The notes under the pieces: model-generated
Databases searched by the model: none
Told to the model about the DNA's origin: nothing
The model's input: the letters and a program-made list of their open reading frames with translations, nothing else
Translations under genes and position numbers: made by a program
Shown: positions 47 through 40,569 of the stretch, one piece after another
Numbering within the stretch: position 1 is the first letter of the stretch
Layout of the letters: each line of letters opens with the position of its first letter
Assembly: GCA_965202585.1 (NCBI GenBank)
Contig: OZ241833.1
Coordinates: forward strand, 28,458,001-28,522,000
Length of the DNA: 64,000 nucleotides
Source of the DNA: Thalia democratica
Lineage: Eukaryota
Reading direction: 5' to 3'

Positions 47-13020
<12,974 letters not shown>

Positions 13021-20946: not shown

Positions 20947-23423
20947 GCAGCTGTAACTTTAGTTATAATGTTGCTTTTTTAAACTCCCGTCAATTACTTT
21001 TATGACCTTTTTATTTTTCGTTGTAAACACCATAATATGTAGTTTAAGTAACGAGCATAAAGTTAATTTTATAGGCAAATTTATTAATTTTTCAAAAAAC
21101 ATAAAACTTTAATGTCAATTATTTTCCTTATCTTAGACGCTATCTATTTTTTTTTTTTTTTTTAGAGAACGCACCTTTGTCTTTAATTAAAAAAAAAATA
21201 TTTAGTTTGGGGTTAAAATTATTTCATGGGGTCCCTCCAAAAATAAATGTTTTTTTTTATTTTTTTTCATTATTATTGTTTTAGAACCAAAAATAAATAT
21301 TTTTTTTTTTTTTTTCCCTTATTTTGCATTTTATTTAAACTCTTAAATGTTTATTTTATAAATAATGTTAATATCTTTTATGATTTGGCCCCAAATCAAA
21401 ATGATGTATATTATACTATCATTTGCCTTGACCATTTCCTAGATAAAAAATTGATAAAAGGAAAAAAAAAAGAATGTGAAATAAAACAAATTTAATTAAA
21501 CTATTTGGAAGGCTTGGTGTTTAGCCAACAGATACTTCGCTCTACTGAGCGCGAAAGATAGATTTTTCACGAAAGTGTTTAATGTTTTAAATAAGCTAAC
21601 TTCTGTCTAATATGAAAGTTCATTATCGAAAGTACTTTATCAGCATGATAACCAATGCGTGTTAGGTTAATAAAGTTAAATGTAATTATCAGTTATAAAT
21701 TGGCATACTTTTAAGTTTTTTTTATATCTCTTTACACTAGACTTTATGTAATTTTTACTATTAAGACTAATTTGGTATGTTGTTTTGTAAGGTCCAAATA
21801 TCTAAATAAATATTATTTTATATAAAATTGACATAAAAAAGATTACTTAAATTAAAATATGCTTTTTTGCATATTTAAAAAATTAAAGTTACACTAGATA
21901 AACATTTTTTTTAGTATAAGCATAAATAGATATATTATTACTTTAAGAAAATAAAACTACAAAAAAGGATAAAAAAAATATAGTAAAAGCATTTATACTT
22001 AAAACGAACAATATAATTAAGCATGGAAAATTATTAAACTTTTTTAGTTAAAAAAAAAACTGTCGAAACGATATATACAGAGATGAAAAATTAGATAAAA
22101 TAGAGATAATAAATAAAATAAATATTTGCATTAAAAGCAAAATTTATAAACAGCTCAATGTTTAAAAAATTTTGTTTTTCGGAAAACCAACAAAGGACTT
22201 ATTTAATTAGGTAAAAAATTACATAGTAAAAACATTGTTTTTGTTTTTTTTGCTAACTTTAGTAACTCTTTTGTATATCATATAAGTGAAAAACATACAT
22301 ATTATAGCTTTTGAAAATCCAAGCTTTTAATAATACTTTTAAATAAAAATTAAACTATACAACAATATTTCTAAAATTAAAAGTTTATATAGTTACATAA
22401 AACAAAACAGTTTCTAAAATCAAATAATTAGTTATCTGTAACATTTTAAATAAACTCAATTAAAGTAGCTACAAAAATTGTAAAGATAACTTATGGTGAA
22501 AAAATTTAAATTTAAGTTCTGATAAAACTTAATAAAATTGTTTAAATTATGAATTTAAAAAAAGCCAAATTCTTCAACAATTATTGATAACGCATATAAC
22601 ATTAATGAAGCTTGATATGTATAAAAAGTAAGTTTTTTACTCTAATGAGTCATCTTTGAAAAAAACCATGGCTTACGTTGACTTTAATGTTTTTAATGCT
22701 GCATGTCTTAAACTCTCATTACAACAACCGTTTCAAAGAACCTACATTTTTAAAAGAGTTAAAAGCACTAAAGCACAACTAATATTTAAGTCATCTAATA
22801 CAATTTTTATGGAAGTTAAAGCAAGTAATGCTAATGAGATTGGTATTTTAGATAAGTATAATAATATTTTTAACAATTAAAACATTTTATCGTTTATACT
22901 ACTTTATAAATACATTATAAGTAAAACTTTTTGTTTGTTTCGCTTTTGCTAATTATAAAATTATTCTTAATTTTAATTTACAAAAAAAAAAGTCAAATTA
23001 TATTGAGTCACGAGTTTATTTGAAAATATTAGTGGATACACAAGGTAAGCTATTATGTATTCTTATTTGTTATTTTTAGTTTTTATATATAATTTCTTAT
23101 GCCTAAAATAATATTAATACGACCATGATTTAGTTTTTAAAAAACTTTAAAAAAATAGCTAATAAAAGTTTGTGGCTAAAGACTAAAATTTAATTATTTT
23201 TCTAAGTCAGTATGTTTTTAGTGACTAAATATAAAGTTTAATAGTACTTAAATAGTTACTTTTTCTCATAAAACTTTTAAGTATTTAATTTTTCATATTT
23301 TTTACATTTTAATAAATTAACTTTCTTAAGTTAAGTAAAAATAGCACTATTTAGTTAAAATTTTTTTACTATGTTAGTGACTTAATTGCAGAATACTTAA
23401 TTTAAATATTATTTCAGTTTGAA

Positions 23424-23924
23424 ATGGCCCGCACAAAGAAACCCGCTGACGGAAAATCAACCGGAGAAAAAGTTCTCGCGAGAAGAAACGCCGCCAAGGC
23501 TTACAGGTTCATTCAGCCAGGCATGAAGAAGCCTCACCGTTACCGCCCCGGAACCGTGGCCCTCCGAGAGATCCGCAAGTACCAGAAGTCCACCGACCTG
23601 CTCATCCGAAAGCTGCCCTTCCAGCGCCTCGTCAAGGAAGTTGCCCAGGACTTCAAGGCCGACCTGCGGTTCCAGAGCGCGGCCATTGCAGCGTTGCAGA
23701 CGGCGGCCGAAGCTTACCGGATTTCCATGTTCGAGGACGCCAACTTGTGCGCCATCCACGCGAAGAGAGTGACAATCTTGCACAATGAAATGCGGCTTGC
23801 GAAGCGCATCATAAACGAAACTTCCGCAGAATTGAACTTTTTTCGTTGTGTGATGTGTTGTCACTTTTTTTATAAAAAAAAAAAATTAAATACAGAACTT
23901 AACTTAATGAAGTTAATAGGTTAA
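23424..23924 (+). CDS. H3: Divergent histone H3 variant (H3.3-derived), 166 aa, coding region intronless
   Basis: Histone fold [36 protein letters not shown]...[10 protein letters not shown]...[19 protein letters not shown] at 87-89 is H3.3-like. Acceptor TTTCAG at 23416-23417, 6 nt before the ATG; candidate donor CAAG/GTAAGC at 23044/23045. No histone stem-loop seen; AATAAA at about 24025. Not cenH3-like: normal loop 1 length, Q68 and F84 retained. Confidence 0.9.
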
Positions 23925-26900
23925 AAATTATTTGTTTTCTTTACTAACAACTGTATAAAAGTGAATGCCATAGTTCATAATTTAAAAGTGTTTTGATTTG
24001 ACGTTTTTTGTCGTACTGGTTCTTAATAAAGTATATAAATTAAGCTGGTAATGTTTGATATGTAAATAAGCTAAAATTCCAAATGAAATTAAAAATATTA
24101 TGAAAGTATTAAATCTGTTTCCAAACTATTTGTAATTTGTTACAAGTAACTTAAAACTACAAGAAATCTTCGAAGTAGTTATAAGGTCTAGTTATGTAAG
24201 TTAGTTTTCTTAAATTTATTTGTAATTTATTATCAATTTTCAACCCCATGTGCTCAATTGAAAATTTTTTAAGTTTTAGTAAGGTTCAATAATCAAATAA
24301 AAACATTTTAAGCTAAAAGCCTAATCAAAATTTTGTATTTTTTCTTTAAATGGTATAGATTTCCTGATCAAGTATTTTTCACATATTGTATAGTAAAAAA
24401 ACATAAGCCTTTTACTGGCACTTGAGAATGTTAAAAGCTTAATAAAATTATGTTTGAATAATATAAGGAATACGCTTCTAATGTATTCAATTTTCCCCTA
24501 GTACTTATGTAACATTATATAAAATTAATGTTCTACAACATCTAAATTGTTAACTCTAATTGAATTGATTGCATTTTAACTGAAAAGTTTGCTAATTTCT
24601 TGTTTAAGTGCACCTGTTCTGTTATCAGAAAATATATTGCAAACTTCTAAAAAAATTATAGACGTAGTTTTGGTGGAATTTTATCACAAATAGTTTAGCC
24701 CTCAACAACTTGATACGGCTTTCACACAGCTCATTCGTAATGTTCCGCTCAATCATGTTTAGTCCTAAATTTTCTTACAAGCTCAAAACTTATTTACTAT
24801 CACTTTGTTATCTGTACGATAGAATACCACTTGAGGGTTTTAAAAGCCTTCAGCAAAAATATTTTTATAAGCTATGAATTGAGAGTTTTTATTAAGGTCA
24901 TAACTATTGTTGATAAATATTAAGAATTTAAAACTTATTCTGTATAAACTACAAAACATAATTGTAAACTAATGTTTAAACAAACAGTTCTTGTAGAAAA
25001 TAACTAGCATTGTTTTCTATTAATATGTATATATATTTATTTATGTTTTTATTAATTATAAAATAAAAAGTTATTTTAAACAATGGTTTAATCAATTAAA
25101 ATTAAATTATATTTTATTAAAACTATTTACTCAATATATATTCAATAATAAAATTAAGAATTTTTAAAGTTTTTATTACCTAACAAGTGTTTTAAATTAA
25201 TCTTCTGTTTTAAAAAAAAATAACATATGCTTTTTCATTTAATTGTTAGAGAATAAAATTAATAAAAAAATAATTTTGTTTTTGGAGTTCAAATGTCCAT
25301 TGACTTCTTGAAATATTGATTTTCAAATTAAATTAGTTTACAAAATACTGAAACTTAAAGAAATGCGCAAATAGATTTGTATTTACAAGCAATTGCTGAT
25401 ACTTGTTTATAGTTAGATGCAGTTTAACTGTGACAACAGGTTTCACAACGCAGTTTAAGTATAAAAAGTTAAAGATGGTTTCTAGTTCAAAATATGAAGC
25501 AAAAGCTTGTTCTGCTAGAACGCAGTTACTGTTAGTTTAGTAAAAGATTTAAAAGTTTTTTTTAAGTCGCGAGTCGAGACCAACACTCAATAGAAAAAAA
25601 ACTTCCACGGGCGCAGTTGTTTTAAAATTATTGTAGTAAATAACATAGAAAGACTGTTTTAAATAAAAAATGTGATAAAACAGGCAATAAAATAGTAATA
25701 GTAAAGGGTAATAAATAAGTTAAGAACCTAACTGAAAGTTTTTTCACAAAATCATTTTGACAAGTTAAATAAAAAAACTTCACCTATCTTTTTGTTTTTG
25801 TAGATAGTTTTGTTTTGTTTTAGCTGAAAAGTTTAGACACTGAGGGCTGCATTTGGCATGCTTGCCGCAGTTTGCCCATCTGTGACTAATTAATCTTTAT
25901 TAACCATGCTGGTTTTAAAAGACTTATCATGCATTTTTCACGTTTTAAATCTAGTTAAAAAAGTTTTCCGTCGTGATAAATAAACATTTCATAAGCCTTT
26001 AATTAGAAAAAATAATTAGCAATAAAACTTTGTTTTTAGTTCAAATAAAAAGCTTTTAAGACTGCTAGCATAAGTGTGTAAGTACATCAGCTTTTTATCA
26101 AGGATATTCATGCGTTATCATTAATTCGTGCATACAAACACTATTTTTCAAAGATTTATTTAGTTAGTGTTCAAAAAATATTTTTTGTAATTTTATAATA
26201 AAATAAAAGTGATTTAAGTATTTCAATATTGTATGCCGAGTAACATCACCTTAAATTATAAACCTTGAGAACTTTTAAACTTTTTATAAACTTTATTTTA
26301 CATCAATGCAGTTCCTGTGCAAACTGTTGATTTTTCGCGTACATTTTAATAAATAACCACTATTAGAGTATAACAAAATGTATATTTTATTATTTTTTAA
26401 ATGACCGCAAGGGGGCGTTAGACGATTATTTATCTAATCACATAATAAAACTCTAACAATGTTTGTTTTTACGCTCAGTTTAGCCATAAGACCGTGCGAA
26501 AGGCACACCAAATCTAAGACTTTAGGACATTAACTAGATTCAAGAACTTTTTTATGATTTTCATTTTATAATATCTTTATATGTATTATTGTATTGTGCT
26601 CAATTTAGCCATCGTTGTGCATGAAGCACGACGTATATTAAGACTTTATATTATTAGTAAGACCTAATTTTGTATTTAAGATTGTGACATTCAGACACTT
26701 TAAGAACATCATTAAGAACATATTTATTTGTAGAACTTTGTGTTTACTTGTTGTGTTTATTTTCGCACTTTTATACTACTGATATATTAGCTGCTTTATC
26801 ACTTCTACTTTCGATTTGTCACATTAACATCACTTTTTCAATAAACTCACTTCATTAAAGAAAATATATATATTAAGTTTGTTACATAATTATTAATTAG

Positions 26901-28272
26901 TAAGTTAAACCTAATGAGTAAGGAAATGTAGTAAAAGCTTTAAGAACTAAACGTTAAAAGCGTTTAGCACAAAAAAGAGGACTTCTCCAATTAAAGGTAG
27001 TTCCTACTCCAGGCCTAGGACTACAAAATAACAATCGTGTTTTAGTCTTTCTTATTCGGAACATTACCATTTGTCATTGTCAAGTATTCGTTTTAACTAG
27101 TTAAACAAAACTTTGCATGATTACATAACTATAAAGCCGAACCTAAATCTATTATAAAATTCTAAAGATATTTAAGAAATGTTAGGTTGATCAGTAATTC
27201 CACCAAAATGTAACGACGTCTTAGTTTTTAATTCAACAAAAAAAAAATATCTCCTAGTAATTTATTTTCACTATAACACTTTCTATTAACCTTATCATCT
27301 GAACTAAGATCTTTTATATTAGAAAGTTACCTTAGCTGCCGATAACCGAAATGTTCTTCGTGCACCAGGTTCTAAGACTAAATATTTTAGCGTTCTTTTG
27401 TTGTTTAATAAACTATAACTTACATAATGGTAATCTAAACAAACAAGCAGCGCTAATTCGTTTATAGTAAAAAAAATATCAGATCATCAACAATATCGTA
27501 GTAAAGAAGAGCCAAGATTTTTTAAGAACTTCCAGTAGAACAAAAACAGCAGTGTATATCATTTGATTAATACAAAAGAAATCTCTCGCAAAAAACAATT
27601 TTAAAGTATGAAATTAATACTATGAACAACTACACTAGTATTCAGTACTTACTTTTTAGTTATTTCACAAGTTTTTTTCAAGTTTCATACACAAGATAAA
27701 CTATTAATTTACTACAGACAAAAATAAATGAAAGAACATAGAATTGTTATTAATTATTTAGTTATTGAACATAAAACTGCGAGATTAGTCTGTCGACTTA
27801 TGCTTCACGATCCTAGTTGGCCCACAGACCGCAGTTTGTCAACCCCTGATGTAATATATAGATAAAAAATTTTATCAAATTGTTTTATAAGAAAACCATA
27901 TGTAATCGCTTTTTTATTACATATAGTCCTTTTTTTCAGGGGTAACACGAAAAAACAGGAAACTAGTAAAAACACACCACTGATTTACTATTAATTAGTT
28001 TTAAATTGTACTCGCACCTTTGAAAATAAACCATAGTAAATTTATAAAATCGTTATTTTTAACTATTGAAAACTTTTTTAGAACAAAAAGTTTTTGGTCT
28101 TTATTTTTTTTAACGATTAACGTATAAAAATATTTAAACAAATACACTTTTTAAAGTTTATTAAGATTATGTGAAACCAGTTTATGTAAACATCTACTTT
28201 GTATAAATATAAACAAATATATGTTACTTATGTCAAAGCAACCATCAAAAAAAAAATCGTGAGATAAATATT

Positions 28273-29754
28273 TCAAAACACAGGAATTTTGACAAAGGAG
28301 AAGTTGTCGAGATGCCCTACATGATCGCACGAGTCCACCCGCCACTCGTCTTCCACCACATCGTAACACTCGAGAGAGCACAAGATGTTTTTCAGCATCA
28401 TCACTTCGGTTCCGATGCAAGTGGCGACGATCGAGGAGAAGGGCAGAGCTTCGGGCGCGTTGAGGAGGGCGAACTTGTTCGAGGCGCTGAACCTCGTACG
28501 TGAACCAGAGAGGACTGATGACGATCAGCTTGCTTCTCGCAGCCACCATGCTGTGCCGGAATTTATACTCCACCATGGTTGCCATCGGCGACCACTGGTC
28601 GGCGCCTACGTCGTAGGACTCCACGGAGTCCAAAATTTTTAAGGCGCCGTCCTGTCCGCCGGAAACCACCACGCGGCCCTCGAAGACGGCGCAGGCCGCG
28701 TTGTATCGCCTAAGCTCAGTGCCGGTTATTTCCCTCCAAGTTTTAGTTTTAGTGTCGAACTCTAAACACTTTTCGGCGACTCTTTGATATTTGTGGCGGC
28801 CGCCCAAAACAAGTATCTTGTCCATGAACGAGCACGCGCAGAAAAACACGCGGTCGTCGGGCATGTCGGTCGCTTCAGCCCAAAACCCGCCCGAGTAAAC
28901 TTCCATGGTCTTTTTCCCGCGGTCGCCGCCGAAAACAAAAACGTCGCCCTTCACAAAAACGGCTTGGGAAAACTTTCGCCTCTTCGTCATCGACGGCAGC
29001 CTTCTCACCTCCCTCAAACTTTCCCCTCCGAGCTCCGCCACGCTTTTGAGCGTTCGGTTCGATCTCAGCTTCCGGCCTCCGCACACCAGCACCTTGAAGT
29101 CTTTTTGCTCGCAGTACCGGTGCGCGCGACTCGGGCGGGCTCCAACGAAGTTCTCCTCGCCGTCCGCAGCTCGTTTCAGCATCGCGAGGCACTCGCCGGC
29201 TTCGCAACAAAAATTCGAGCTGCGCAGGAGCCGCTTCAAGGCGTGGCGGGAAAGAAGCCGGAGACGGACTTTCAGCAAAAGCGTCTTCGCGTGCCTCGCC
29301 CGTTCTTTTTTGCGGTGAAGCGACCAGGCGTTGGCGGCGTTGAACACCTCCAGCTCGGAAGTCACGTTCAAGTCGGAGCTGTGGAGTATTTCGGTCACGC
29401 GCTCGATTTCAAGCTCCAAGAAGTTGGGGGTCTCGCACACCATGGCGAAACAGCGGCTTATGTAGTTGAACGCCGCGTTTGAAAGGCGGGGAAGGTTGAA
29501 AACTTTGGAAAACTGGTAGTAAGTTGTCGCGTTTTGAACGCAGAGTGTTGCTTGTAAACGAACGGACGTTTTGCATTCTGCGTTTAGAATCAGCTTGTGT
29601 TTTTTTGTTGTGGAAATGCAATCATCAACACTTTTCTTGTTCTTTTTACCTAGAACAAAATTATTATTTTTAAGTAAAATAGTAAAACAAGGGTTATCAG
29701 TAGTTTTTTGAAATACTTCTATGTAGTTTTTGAAATCAATGTTTGGCAAAACAC
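28273..29754 (-). CDS. BACK + kelch-repeat protein, one large GC-rich exon; frameshifted near 28492 and start exon not found (possible pseudogene)
   Basis: BACK-like FLELEIERVTEILHSSDLNVTSELEVFNAANAW...LLLKVRL, and kelch repeats VLVCGG, VFVFGG, ILVLGG, VVVSGG, VESYDVGADQWSPM. After YEV a shifted frame continues kelch-like (ASNKFALL...CYDVVEDEWRVD...FSFVKIPVF) to TGA at 28273-28275. A phase-1 acceptor TTCTTCAG sits at 29755-29756. Confidence 0.8.
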
Positions 29755-40104: not shown

Positions 40105-40569
40105 TCAGCTACATTTGGCTTCTATGCACAGCACAACACGGTAAACTTTTATTTTTCTACGTTTTTGCTCTACTGCGCATCTCGCAAGCCGTATGTCCTT
40201 CTGCATGCTGTTCACCCTCTTGGCATGGGTTGCGTACAAGTTGGCGTCCTCGAACATGGAAACCAGGTAAGCTTCGGCTGCCGTCTGCAACGCTTTAATC
40301 GTGGCAGTCTTGAATCTCTGAACGGTCTTGAAGTCCTGGGCTATTTTCTTGACGAGGCGCTGGAAGGGTATTTTTCTGATCAGCAAGTCGGTGGACTTCT
40401 AGTATTTGCGGATCTCTCGGAGGGCCACGGTTCCGGGCGGTAACGGTGAGGTTTTTTCATGCCTTGCTAAATTTTCGCAGGGCACTTGTAAGCATTGGCA
40501 GCGTTTCTTTTGGCACGAACTTTTCTTCCAGTTGATTTTTGATAAACGGTTTTTTTTTATAATGGCCAT
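40105..40569 (-). pseudogene. H3: Disabled paralog of the divergent H3 variant
   Basis: Same TTTCAG/TTTGAAATGGCC start context as 23424. Extra A in the A-run near 40555, one C missing near 40436, TAG at Q55 (40399-40401). The downstream fold [19 protein letters not shown]...[19 protein letters not shown] is open to TGA at 40105. Confidence 0.88.

Follow-up and report, generated by a model that had tools for sequence, protein, structure and literature searches.

In the pelagic tunicate Oikopleura dioica, the male-specific histones H3t.1 to H3t.3 occur in addition to H3.2, H3.3 and CenH3 (Moosmann et al., 2011; PMC3156773). One of them, OdH3t.3, is an orphan, intronless gene of the replacement type with three tail and ten fold substitutions and no described loss of K27, and the same species carries a truncated, unexpressed H3 pseudogene (PMC3156773). 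Loss of K27 has been studied in Arabidopsis, where the atypical H3.15 (HTR15), which lacks this residue, cannot be trimethylated by PRC2, and where the sperm-specific H3.10 (HTR10) is linked to H3K27me3 reprogramming in sperm (PMC9797984). The K27-less H3 family that we describe here from the salp Thalia democratica resembles the Oikopleura H3t genes in being a lineage-specific H3 of pelagic tunicates with substitutions adjoining K79 and in loop 2/alpha3. It differs from H3t.3 in a tail that is far more rewritten and has lost K27, a comparison made through the published description of H3t.3. The plant genes provide a functional analogy for an H3 without K27 and are at most convergent with the salp family: the replaced residues are different, and the plant functions were shown experimentally, those of the salp family being predicted from sequence. 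While lineage-specific H3 variants as such are known, this K27-less H3 family of pelagic tunicates (salps) is previously undescribed.

The locus that led to the family lies in a window of 64,000 nucleotides, the whole stretch of DNA analysed here. It is an H3-like ATG-to-TAA frame of 166 codons on the forward strand (23424-23924), hereafter the window copy, which carries the H3 signature blocks and matches the Pfam Histone family (PF00125, 3.3e-38) over residues 10-129, taking in alphaN to alpha3. Identity to the canonical H3 and H3.3 proteins of the same genome is 68-70%. The coding region has a GC content of 55-63% against 13-25% (~20%) in its flanks, and a GC3 of 0.73-0.75 that it shares with the family, confirming the strongly GC3-rich codon usage noted in the first-pass annotation of this DNA. 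Rfam gave no hits of any kind over the 64-kb window, and thus no histone 3' stem-loop. An AlphaFold2 run on the 166-aa frame with a 24-row alignment placed helices where expected and a low-confidence helix in the C-terminal extension, with a quality too poor for use (mean pLDDT 49, pTM 0.27). The features of the locus and its surroundings are as follows.

23410-23423 (+): splice (or trans-splice) acceptor, ..tttcag followed by tttgaa, abutting the ATG; AGTTTGAAATGGC is (nearly) invariant in family genes, pseudogenes and Tara Oceans relatives.
23424-23537 (+): N-terminal tail, codons 1-38, of the family type (K27/S28 gone, R8 gone, K18R), with private T8A and P18L.
23538-23777 (+): histone fold from alphaN to loop 2, codons 39-118, with ~96% nucleotide identity to paralogues, GC as in intact copies, and private L100R and V101I (canonical numbering).
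23778-23825 (+): diverged alpha3/C-terminal segment, codons 119-134, with 70% nucleotide identity to paralogues and 9-10 private replacements.
23826-23924 (+): read-through extension of 32 codons plus stop in former 3'UTR, aligned with the 3'UTRs of paralogue L003 and Tara contig L031; GC 0.24.
23860-23886 (+): site of a 14-nt deletion that removed the 3'UTR motif TTTGCTGTGTRAA, kept in 8/9 intact family genes, followed by a genomic A12 run (23874-23885).
24025-24030 (+): polyadenylation signal AATAAA, within a block that L003 and L031 also conserve.
23407-27755 (no strand): segmental duplication at the DNA level, 73-79% identical to the paralogue locus at C9:35.30 Mb.
40160-40569 (-): second copy of the family and clearly a pseudogene, having in-frame stops, a 1-nt deletion and a GC decayed to 0.485.

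The Thalia genome holds six copies of the family, three of them open (the window copy, L002 and L003) and three clearly dead. A six-frame genome search located L002 (C9:35.03 Mb, 134 aa) and L003 (C9:35.31 Mb, 141 aa), both with the rewritten tail and a normal H3 C-terminus, and a DNA search of the genome located the dead copies at C7:53.91 Mb, at C7:54.20 Mb and within the window at 40160-40569 (-). The last of these, 16 kb from the window copy and on the opposite strand, has two in-frame TAG stops and its 1-nt deletion in RYRPGT, and its tail, ..AYKCPAKI*QGMKKPH, is like that of a long-tail group seen in the Tara data. Some 20 further members in seven 90% clusters, all unnamed, come from Tara Oceans metagenome contigs, and these relatives have AT-rich flanks and the same acceptor as the genome copies. 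A protein search restricted to the tail separated the family (E at or below 1e-12) from full-length generic H3 proteins of normal size (~1e-5) by a sharp gap. There were no named NCBI or UniProt records among the family-level matches of the protein search, an exact-sequence look-up of the three open proteins found none in the protein collection, and a literature search returned no paper on salp histones and no mention of a K27-less salp H3 family.

In a maximum likelihood tree with the other H3 types of the genome, the 21 family rows form one clade on a long stem with support of 100/100. The first-pass annotation, which read the locus as a lineage-specific variant derived from H3.3, had proposed a search for relatives and a phylogeny as checks, and both agree with it insofar as the family forms this clade of its own, outside named protein records. 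Its reading of an H3.3-type, K27-less variant stands at the level of the family, which has AAI at positions 87-89, no stem-loop and a K27 loss that is conserved across species; the tail, on the other hand, is not private to the window locus. Between the short-tail and long-tail subgroups (defined below) omega is 0.16-0.21 at dS 0.31-0.47, so the family is held by purifying selection, and its GC3 (0.73-0.75) contrasts with 0.31-0.55 in every other H3 gene examined. Judged from sequence, this gene family is, on the whole, a functioning one. The window copy has the derived tail and fold substitutions, falls within the 100/100 clade and shares its flanks with L003, but it departs from the family at nine conserved residues and lacks the normal stop (..RIRGxx); it is a family member by descent and not a conserved member. 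The candidates for functional genes are L002 and L003.

The tail common to the family begins with ARTKK (K at position 5) and continues with xDGKS, K18R, A25Y, KAY-R/K-F/Y and GMKKPH. Members fall into a short-tail group of 133-134 aa, to which the window copy belongs, and a long-tail group of 135-137 aa (e.g. ..AYRYSATITQGGMKKPH), with K27 aligned to F or deleted in the former and aligned to Y in the latter. In the window copy the canonical ..KAARKSAPATGGVKKPH block is replaced, K27 and S28 are gone and the tail is a net 2 aa shorter, all as described at first pass. The accompanying statement that K9, S10 and T11 are kept holds for the lysine only: TDGKS replaces TARKS, R8 is lost and K18 is R. 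All members have one extra residue before the K9-equivalent lysine and D-G/R instead of A-R, with R8 lost, and therefore the ARKS context at K9 is absent.

In the fold, the family substitutions are R53K, E59D, R72K, T80A (which adjoins K79), G90A/E, E94T, G102S, L103M and T107A. Residue G90, which sets the chaperone choice of H3.3, is not kept, as the patch at positions 87-90 reads AAIA in the short-tail group, including the window copy, and AAIE in the long-tail group; the region of residue 31 (S31) is rewritten. The core changes listed at first pass (E94T, S96A, L100R, G102S, P121H, K122N and D123E) were all present in our alignment. Of these, E94T, S96A and G102S are family-wide, whereas L100R, P121H, K122N and D123E are private to the window copy. 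The genome encodes SUZ12 (VEFS box, 65.7 bits) and an EZH2-type CXC domain (43 bits), so PRC2 probably exists in it and the loss of K27 could matter. Nucleosomes made with the family proteins would be unable to carry PRC2 methylation or acetylation at H3K27, and, with R8 and the A25-R26-K27-S28 context lost, both ARKS motifs for K9/K27 writers and chromodomain readers would be absent.

The family resembles H3.3 in its A87/A88/I89-type alpha2 patch, the lack of a stem-loop, the AATAAA signal and an acceptor before the ATG as in the genome's H3.3 gene L015. It differs from H3.3 in A or E at G90, an unalignable S31 region, ~25% amino-acid differences and a GC3 of 0.73-0.75 versus 0.31. The window copy itself is H3.3-like in having no stem-loop, and its conserved AATAAA predicts polyadenylation. 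Thus far the poly(A)-type 3' end proposed at first pass stands (AATAAA at 24025-24030, no stem-loop), but the A12 run is genomic 3'UTR and not the tail of a retrocopy. CenH3/CENP-A proteins typically have a fold of ~50% identity, a lengthened loop 1 and a long unalignable tail. We rejected an assignment to this class, as the fold is ~85% identical to H3.3, loop 1 has no insertion and the tail can be aligned. A Pfam match of the window copy to CENP-T_C fell below the cut-off of that family.

Several elements of the flanks are conserved together with the coding region. The ..tttcag/tttgaaATG acceptor is (nearly) invariant across copies, with its AG 6 nt upstream of the ATG, bearing out the H3.3-type 5' splice architecture described at first pass. 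The upstream motif AGCTTGATCTAT lies at -104 to -121 in 7/9 intact genes, and the 3'UTR motif TTTGCTGTGTRAA lies 18-55 nt past the stop in 8/9 (L002:1936-1948; 26 nt past the stop of L003, on the reverse strand; and L031, L032 and L052-L055). Both motifs are common to paralogues and species whose remaining flanks have diverged, and they are candidates for a promoter element, or for a 3' processing or stability element. In L002-type genes, GGGTAATTGCCATGTT is also kept ~135 nt past the stop.

Beyond these elements, the window copy and L003 are collinear over 23407-27755 (73-79% identity), and at least 250 nt of upstream sequence can be aligned among all copies; this homology, 4.3 kb downstream and at least 250 nt upstream, means that the family copies are DNA-level duplicates. 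Their flanks are mosaic: those of L055 are L003-like upstream and L002-like downstream, and the 3' flank of L031 is 85% identical to that of the window copy over 200 nt, as against 78% to that of L003. Such mosaics indicate probable recombination or gene conversion among family loci. In the pair defined by its flanks as L003 and L031, dS (0.139) is close to flank divergence (~0.13), and synonymous sites in the family gene are therefore near neutral. Paralogue pairs within the genome have a dS of only ~0.11 despite flanks that are 25-30% diverged or unalignable, from which we infer gene conversion or recombination among coding regions. The family probably arose from an H3.3-type, polyadenylated H3 gene and may spread by DNA-level duplication and recombination, with copies on C9 and C7.

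Against this background the window copy is an outlier. Nine of its residues are private replacements in columns that do not otherwise vary across 21 members, compared with 0-2 in the others, and all but one of these nine are in the fold, at residues kept by canonical H3 (L100R, V101I, M120L, P121H, I124M, R128K, R131I and G132N). Its end branch is 0.15 long, 16 times the 0.009 of L002 and L003. Amino-acid relative-rate tests gave 13:0 changes against L002 (p=0.0002) and 12:2 against L003 (p=0.013), whereas each lineage has 4 private synonymous changes. The first-pass annotation had named a dN/dS near 1 as the mark of a young pseudogene, a value that is approached on the window branch (~0.7-0.9, on small counts) and not in the family (0.16-0.21). 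In detail, omega on this branch is ~0.69 by strict counts and ~0.9 with reference-variable codons added, compared with 0.00 for L002 and 0.15 for L003, all from small counts; the ratio of nonsynonymous to synonymous changes does not differ significantly from that of the pooled other lineages (Fisher p=0.16).

The divergence of the window copy is concentrated at its 3' end. As far as nt 350 it is 92-100% identical to both paralogues at the nucleotide level, but over the final 50 nt of normal coding sequence identity falls to 70-72%, which is the level of non-coding flank, whereas L002 and L003 are 88% identical to each other there. In a three-way alignment of the window copy, L003 and L031, private changes number 10, 2 and 1, respectively, in the last 55 coding columns; 7 (plus several private indels), 1 and 0 in the first 32 aligned columns of the proximal 3'UTR; and 15, 9 and 14 in 194 columns of the distal flank. 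The fast segment thus crosses the coding boundary and runs ~80 nt into the 3'UTR. Its C-terminal changes are biased from GC to AT (segment GC 0.458 versus 0.542). The paralogues stop after 134 or 141 aa, while the window copy adds 32 read-through codons homologous to paralogue 3'UTR, and its length of 166 aa results from loss of the normal stop through substitutions and indels. The frame described as intact at first pass is therefore open over 166 codons, but it has lost its normal stop, and 3'UTR sequence is translated in its last 32 codons. The window copy also lacks the upstream motif AGCTTGATCTAT, as does the dead copy 16 kb away. No other copy of the altered C-terminal segment was found in a search of the genome, and patch conversion from an assembled copy was rejected, as the genome contains no donor for the alpha3 segment.

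We consider it probable on balance that the window copy is a young, still-open unprocessed pseudogene or a relaxed, decaying paralogue and not a functional variant; half of the family copies in the genome (3/6) are already dead. Like young unprocessed pseudogenes of birth-and-death histone families, it is a DNA duplicate in a family with frequent gene death, with faster nonsynonymous change and with loss of its stop and of flanking motifs. It is unlike typical ones in that its frame is still open and its 5' three quarters resemble intact copies in composition and at synonymous sites. A local burst of substitutions and several indels, from codon 119 to ~80 nt into the 3'UTR, may have damaged the 3' end of one duplicate, rewriting helix alpha3, destroying the stop and deleting the conserved 3'UTR motif. 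Relaxed evolution could then have added the radical replacements L100R (in the buried alpha2 core) and P18L, together with T8A. The first-pass annotation had singled out this locus as the best candidate for undescribed biology. That is not supported, because the changes from which a special, less stable nucleosome had been read (L100R, P121H, K122N and D123E) are private to the copy, affect positions that do not vary in the 21 other members or in canonical H3, and come with the loss of its stop and of conserved flanking motifs.

Two readings would place the peculiarities of the window copy outside the duplication and decay of a gene. A GC-rich island that lacks introns, is surrounded by AT-rich DNA and is followed by an A12 run ~50 nt past the fold could suggest a processed pseudogene, retrotransposed from an H3.3 mRNA. 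The paralogue locus is nevertheless homologous for 4.3 kb on the downstream side and for at least 250 nt on the upstream side, far past any mRNA; the A-run is internal to a 3'UTR common to L003 and Tara contig L031; all family members have the same genomic acceptor and promoter-proximal sequence; and the stem-loop-less H3.3 gene of the genome, L015, cannot be the source of a GC3-rich copy since its GC3 is 0.31. We therefore rejected a processed retropseudogene, on the flank homology beyond any mRNA and the position of the A-run within the shared 3'UTR, and regard it as scarcely credible. It is likewise very improbable that errors of assembly or consensus, made where several copies exist, account for the private changes and the missing stop, a reading suggested by a central coding part that is common to several copies and by an approximately 5-fold contig depth there. 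Short-read contigs from two public runs of one sample, which behave as DNA, are identical to 22940-23516 and 23744-24063 at a single-copy depth of ~40x, an agreement to be read with the limit that the runs possibly come from the assembled sample and are compatible with a somatic or individual-specific allele. The exact contigs take in the whole of the diverged alpha3, the read-through and the deletion site, so the odd 3' part of the window copy is no artefact of assembly; the codon of L100R (23718-23720) is in the gap between the exact contigs listed. A 165-nt contig identical to 23549-23713 has a depth of ~200, compared with ~40 in its flanks, and one or two positions distinguish it from the assembled paralogues; this depth reflects either paralogue variants collapsed by the contig builder or more copies than were assembled.

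A more substantial rival to decay is that the window copy is an expressed, neofunctionalised member in which the tail and most of the fold are under selection while alpha3 and the C-terminus have been reshaped by positive selection and extended. As alpha3 and the C-terminus form the H3-H3' four-helix-bundle interface, this would imply an H3 able to pair with H4 whose tetramers form in another way or from this H3 only. The fold is a single open frame with no indel and no stop, although the adjoining 3'UTR has several indels. In codons 1-118 the window branch has 4-5 nonsynonymous and 4 synonymous nucleotide changes, a nonsynonymous rate of ~0.2-0.4 of the neutral (flank or synonymous) rate, and their GC (0.588) and GC3 (0.75) equal those of intact copies, whereas the clear pseudogenes have decayed to a GC of 0.485-0.52. 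Neither the acceptor nor the AATAAA block is damaged. In alpha3, several replacements (M to L, D to E, I to M, R to K) are conservative and preserve the arrangement of hydrophobic residues, and the excess of private changes over the distal flank (10 in 55 C-terminal columns versus 15 in 194) could also mean positive selection. The fast segment, however, enters the 3'UTR with indels and removes a motif conserved in intact genes, and a mutational event fits this passage beyond the coding boundary better than selection on the protein. Moreover, practically every H3 keeps L100, P121, R131 and G132, the arginine of L100R brings a charge into the buried core of alpha2, and the extension of 32 codons consists of ordinary AT-rich 3'UTR. 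The altered C-terminus has no relative elsewhere in the genome, nor was an orthologue of the private C-terminus found among 5.8 billion proteins, where only generic divergent H3s were matched, a weak negative given the thin Tara coverage. The clean 5' part fits a recent loss of constraint, a refresh by gene conversion, or continued selection on the first three quarters. Gene conversion among paralogues can account for it, paralogues being closer at synonymous sites than flank-defined orthologues. Taking these points together, we hold neofunctionalisation to be rather unlikely and retain decay as the preferred reading.

Other H3 genes of the genome were recorded in the same searches. Canonical H3 genes carry the histone stem-loop, and so do several genes with an H3.3 sequence: L019, L005, L008 and L020 (on C2) encode H3.3-type proteins (AAIG, with S31 or N31) with a canonical histone 3' stem-loop, ggcccttttaagggcc. 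An H3.3 protein sequence is thus combined with a predicted replication-dependent mRNA end in the Thalia genome. The H3.3 gene without a stem-loop, L015, is at C6:49.80 Mb and has a GC3 of only 0.31. Three stem-loop-less H3 variants at C1:46.88-47.81 Mb (L004, L012 and L022) have an acceptor before the ATG, R53K (in L004) and changes of the E94A/S96A type; at the DNA level they are closest to the K27-less family (77-78% over nt 147-421), of which they are a possible sister lineage.

The remaining observations concern the surroundings of the window copy and other contigs. Just beyond the duplicated block, and convergent with the window copy, is a GC-rich intronless frame of 532 codons (28151-29749, -) with BACK and Kelch domains (Pfam 1e-23 and 2e-22) and no BTB in frame. 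Its last ~90 residues resemble frame-shifted junk, and the frame may represent either a retrocopy or a gene of the KLHL type in decay. The frame at 4640-5005 (+) consists of a short repeat rich in Ala, Thr, Glu and Arg and is probably a translated tandem repeat. For the coiled-coil-like exons at 9076-12624 (-), the translations of four exons had no significant Pfam family; these are possibly the neighbouring axonemal gene of the first-pass annotation, an identification that finds no support in Pfam for the exons at 9-12.6 kb. Degraded COX1 fragments with many stops at C4:56.84-56.94 Mb and C757:31.3-32.1 kb are probably NUMTs, and an intact COX1 is on C1833. This mitochondrial gene yields a normal protein under the ascidian code only, with AGA and AGG at conserved Gly positions and TGA at Trp, as expected of a tunicate.

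To our knowledge, animals seldom have lineage-specific H3 variants in which a major regulatory lysine is removed, and the clearest experimentally studied K27-less cases that we found are plant H3.15 and H3.10. That the salp family serves the germline is a guess by analogy with Oikopleura H3t and with plant H3.10 and H3.15. We also considered a bolder and clearly unlikely combination, in which the family would be a working H3 blind to both Polycomb and HP1 (no K27, no ARKS, an altered G90 patch), deposited at a life stage or in the germline, and the window copy would at the same time be a live, expressed offshoot with a rebuilt alpha3 and an extended C-terminus that alter H3-H3' tetramerisation. 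If true, a chordate would have an H3-like nucleosome subunit of a kind that is new in its structure. The substitutions that look most interesting belong to a copy that is probably decaying, which calls for caution, and what the locus shows is birth-and-death and recombination in a K27-less H3 family. Salps are the closest invertebrate relatives of vertebrates, and in them this conserved H3 family, without K27 and without R8, would offer a natural experiment on chromatin that is partly free of H3K27 and K9-context marking.
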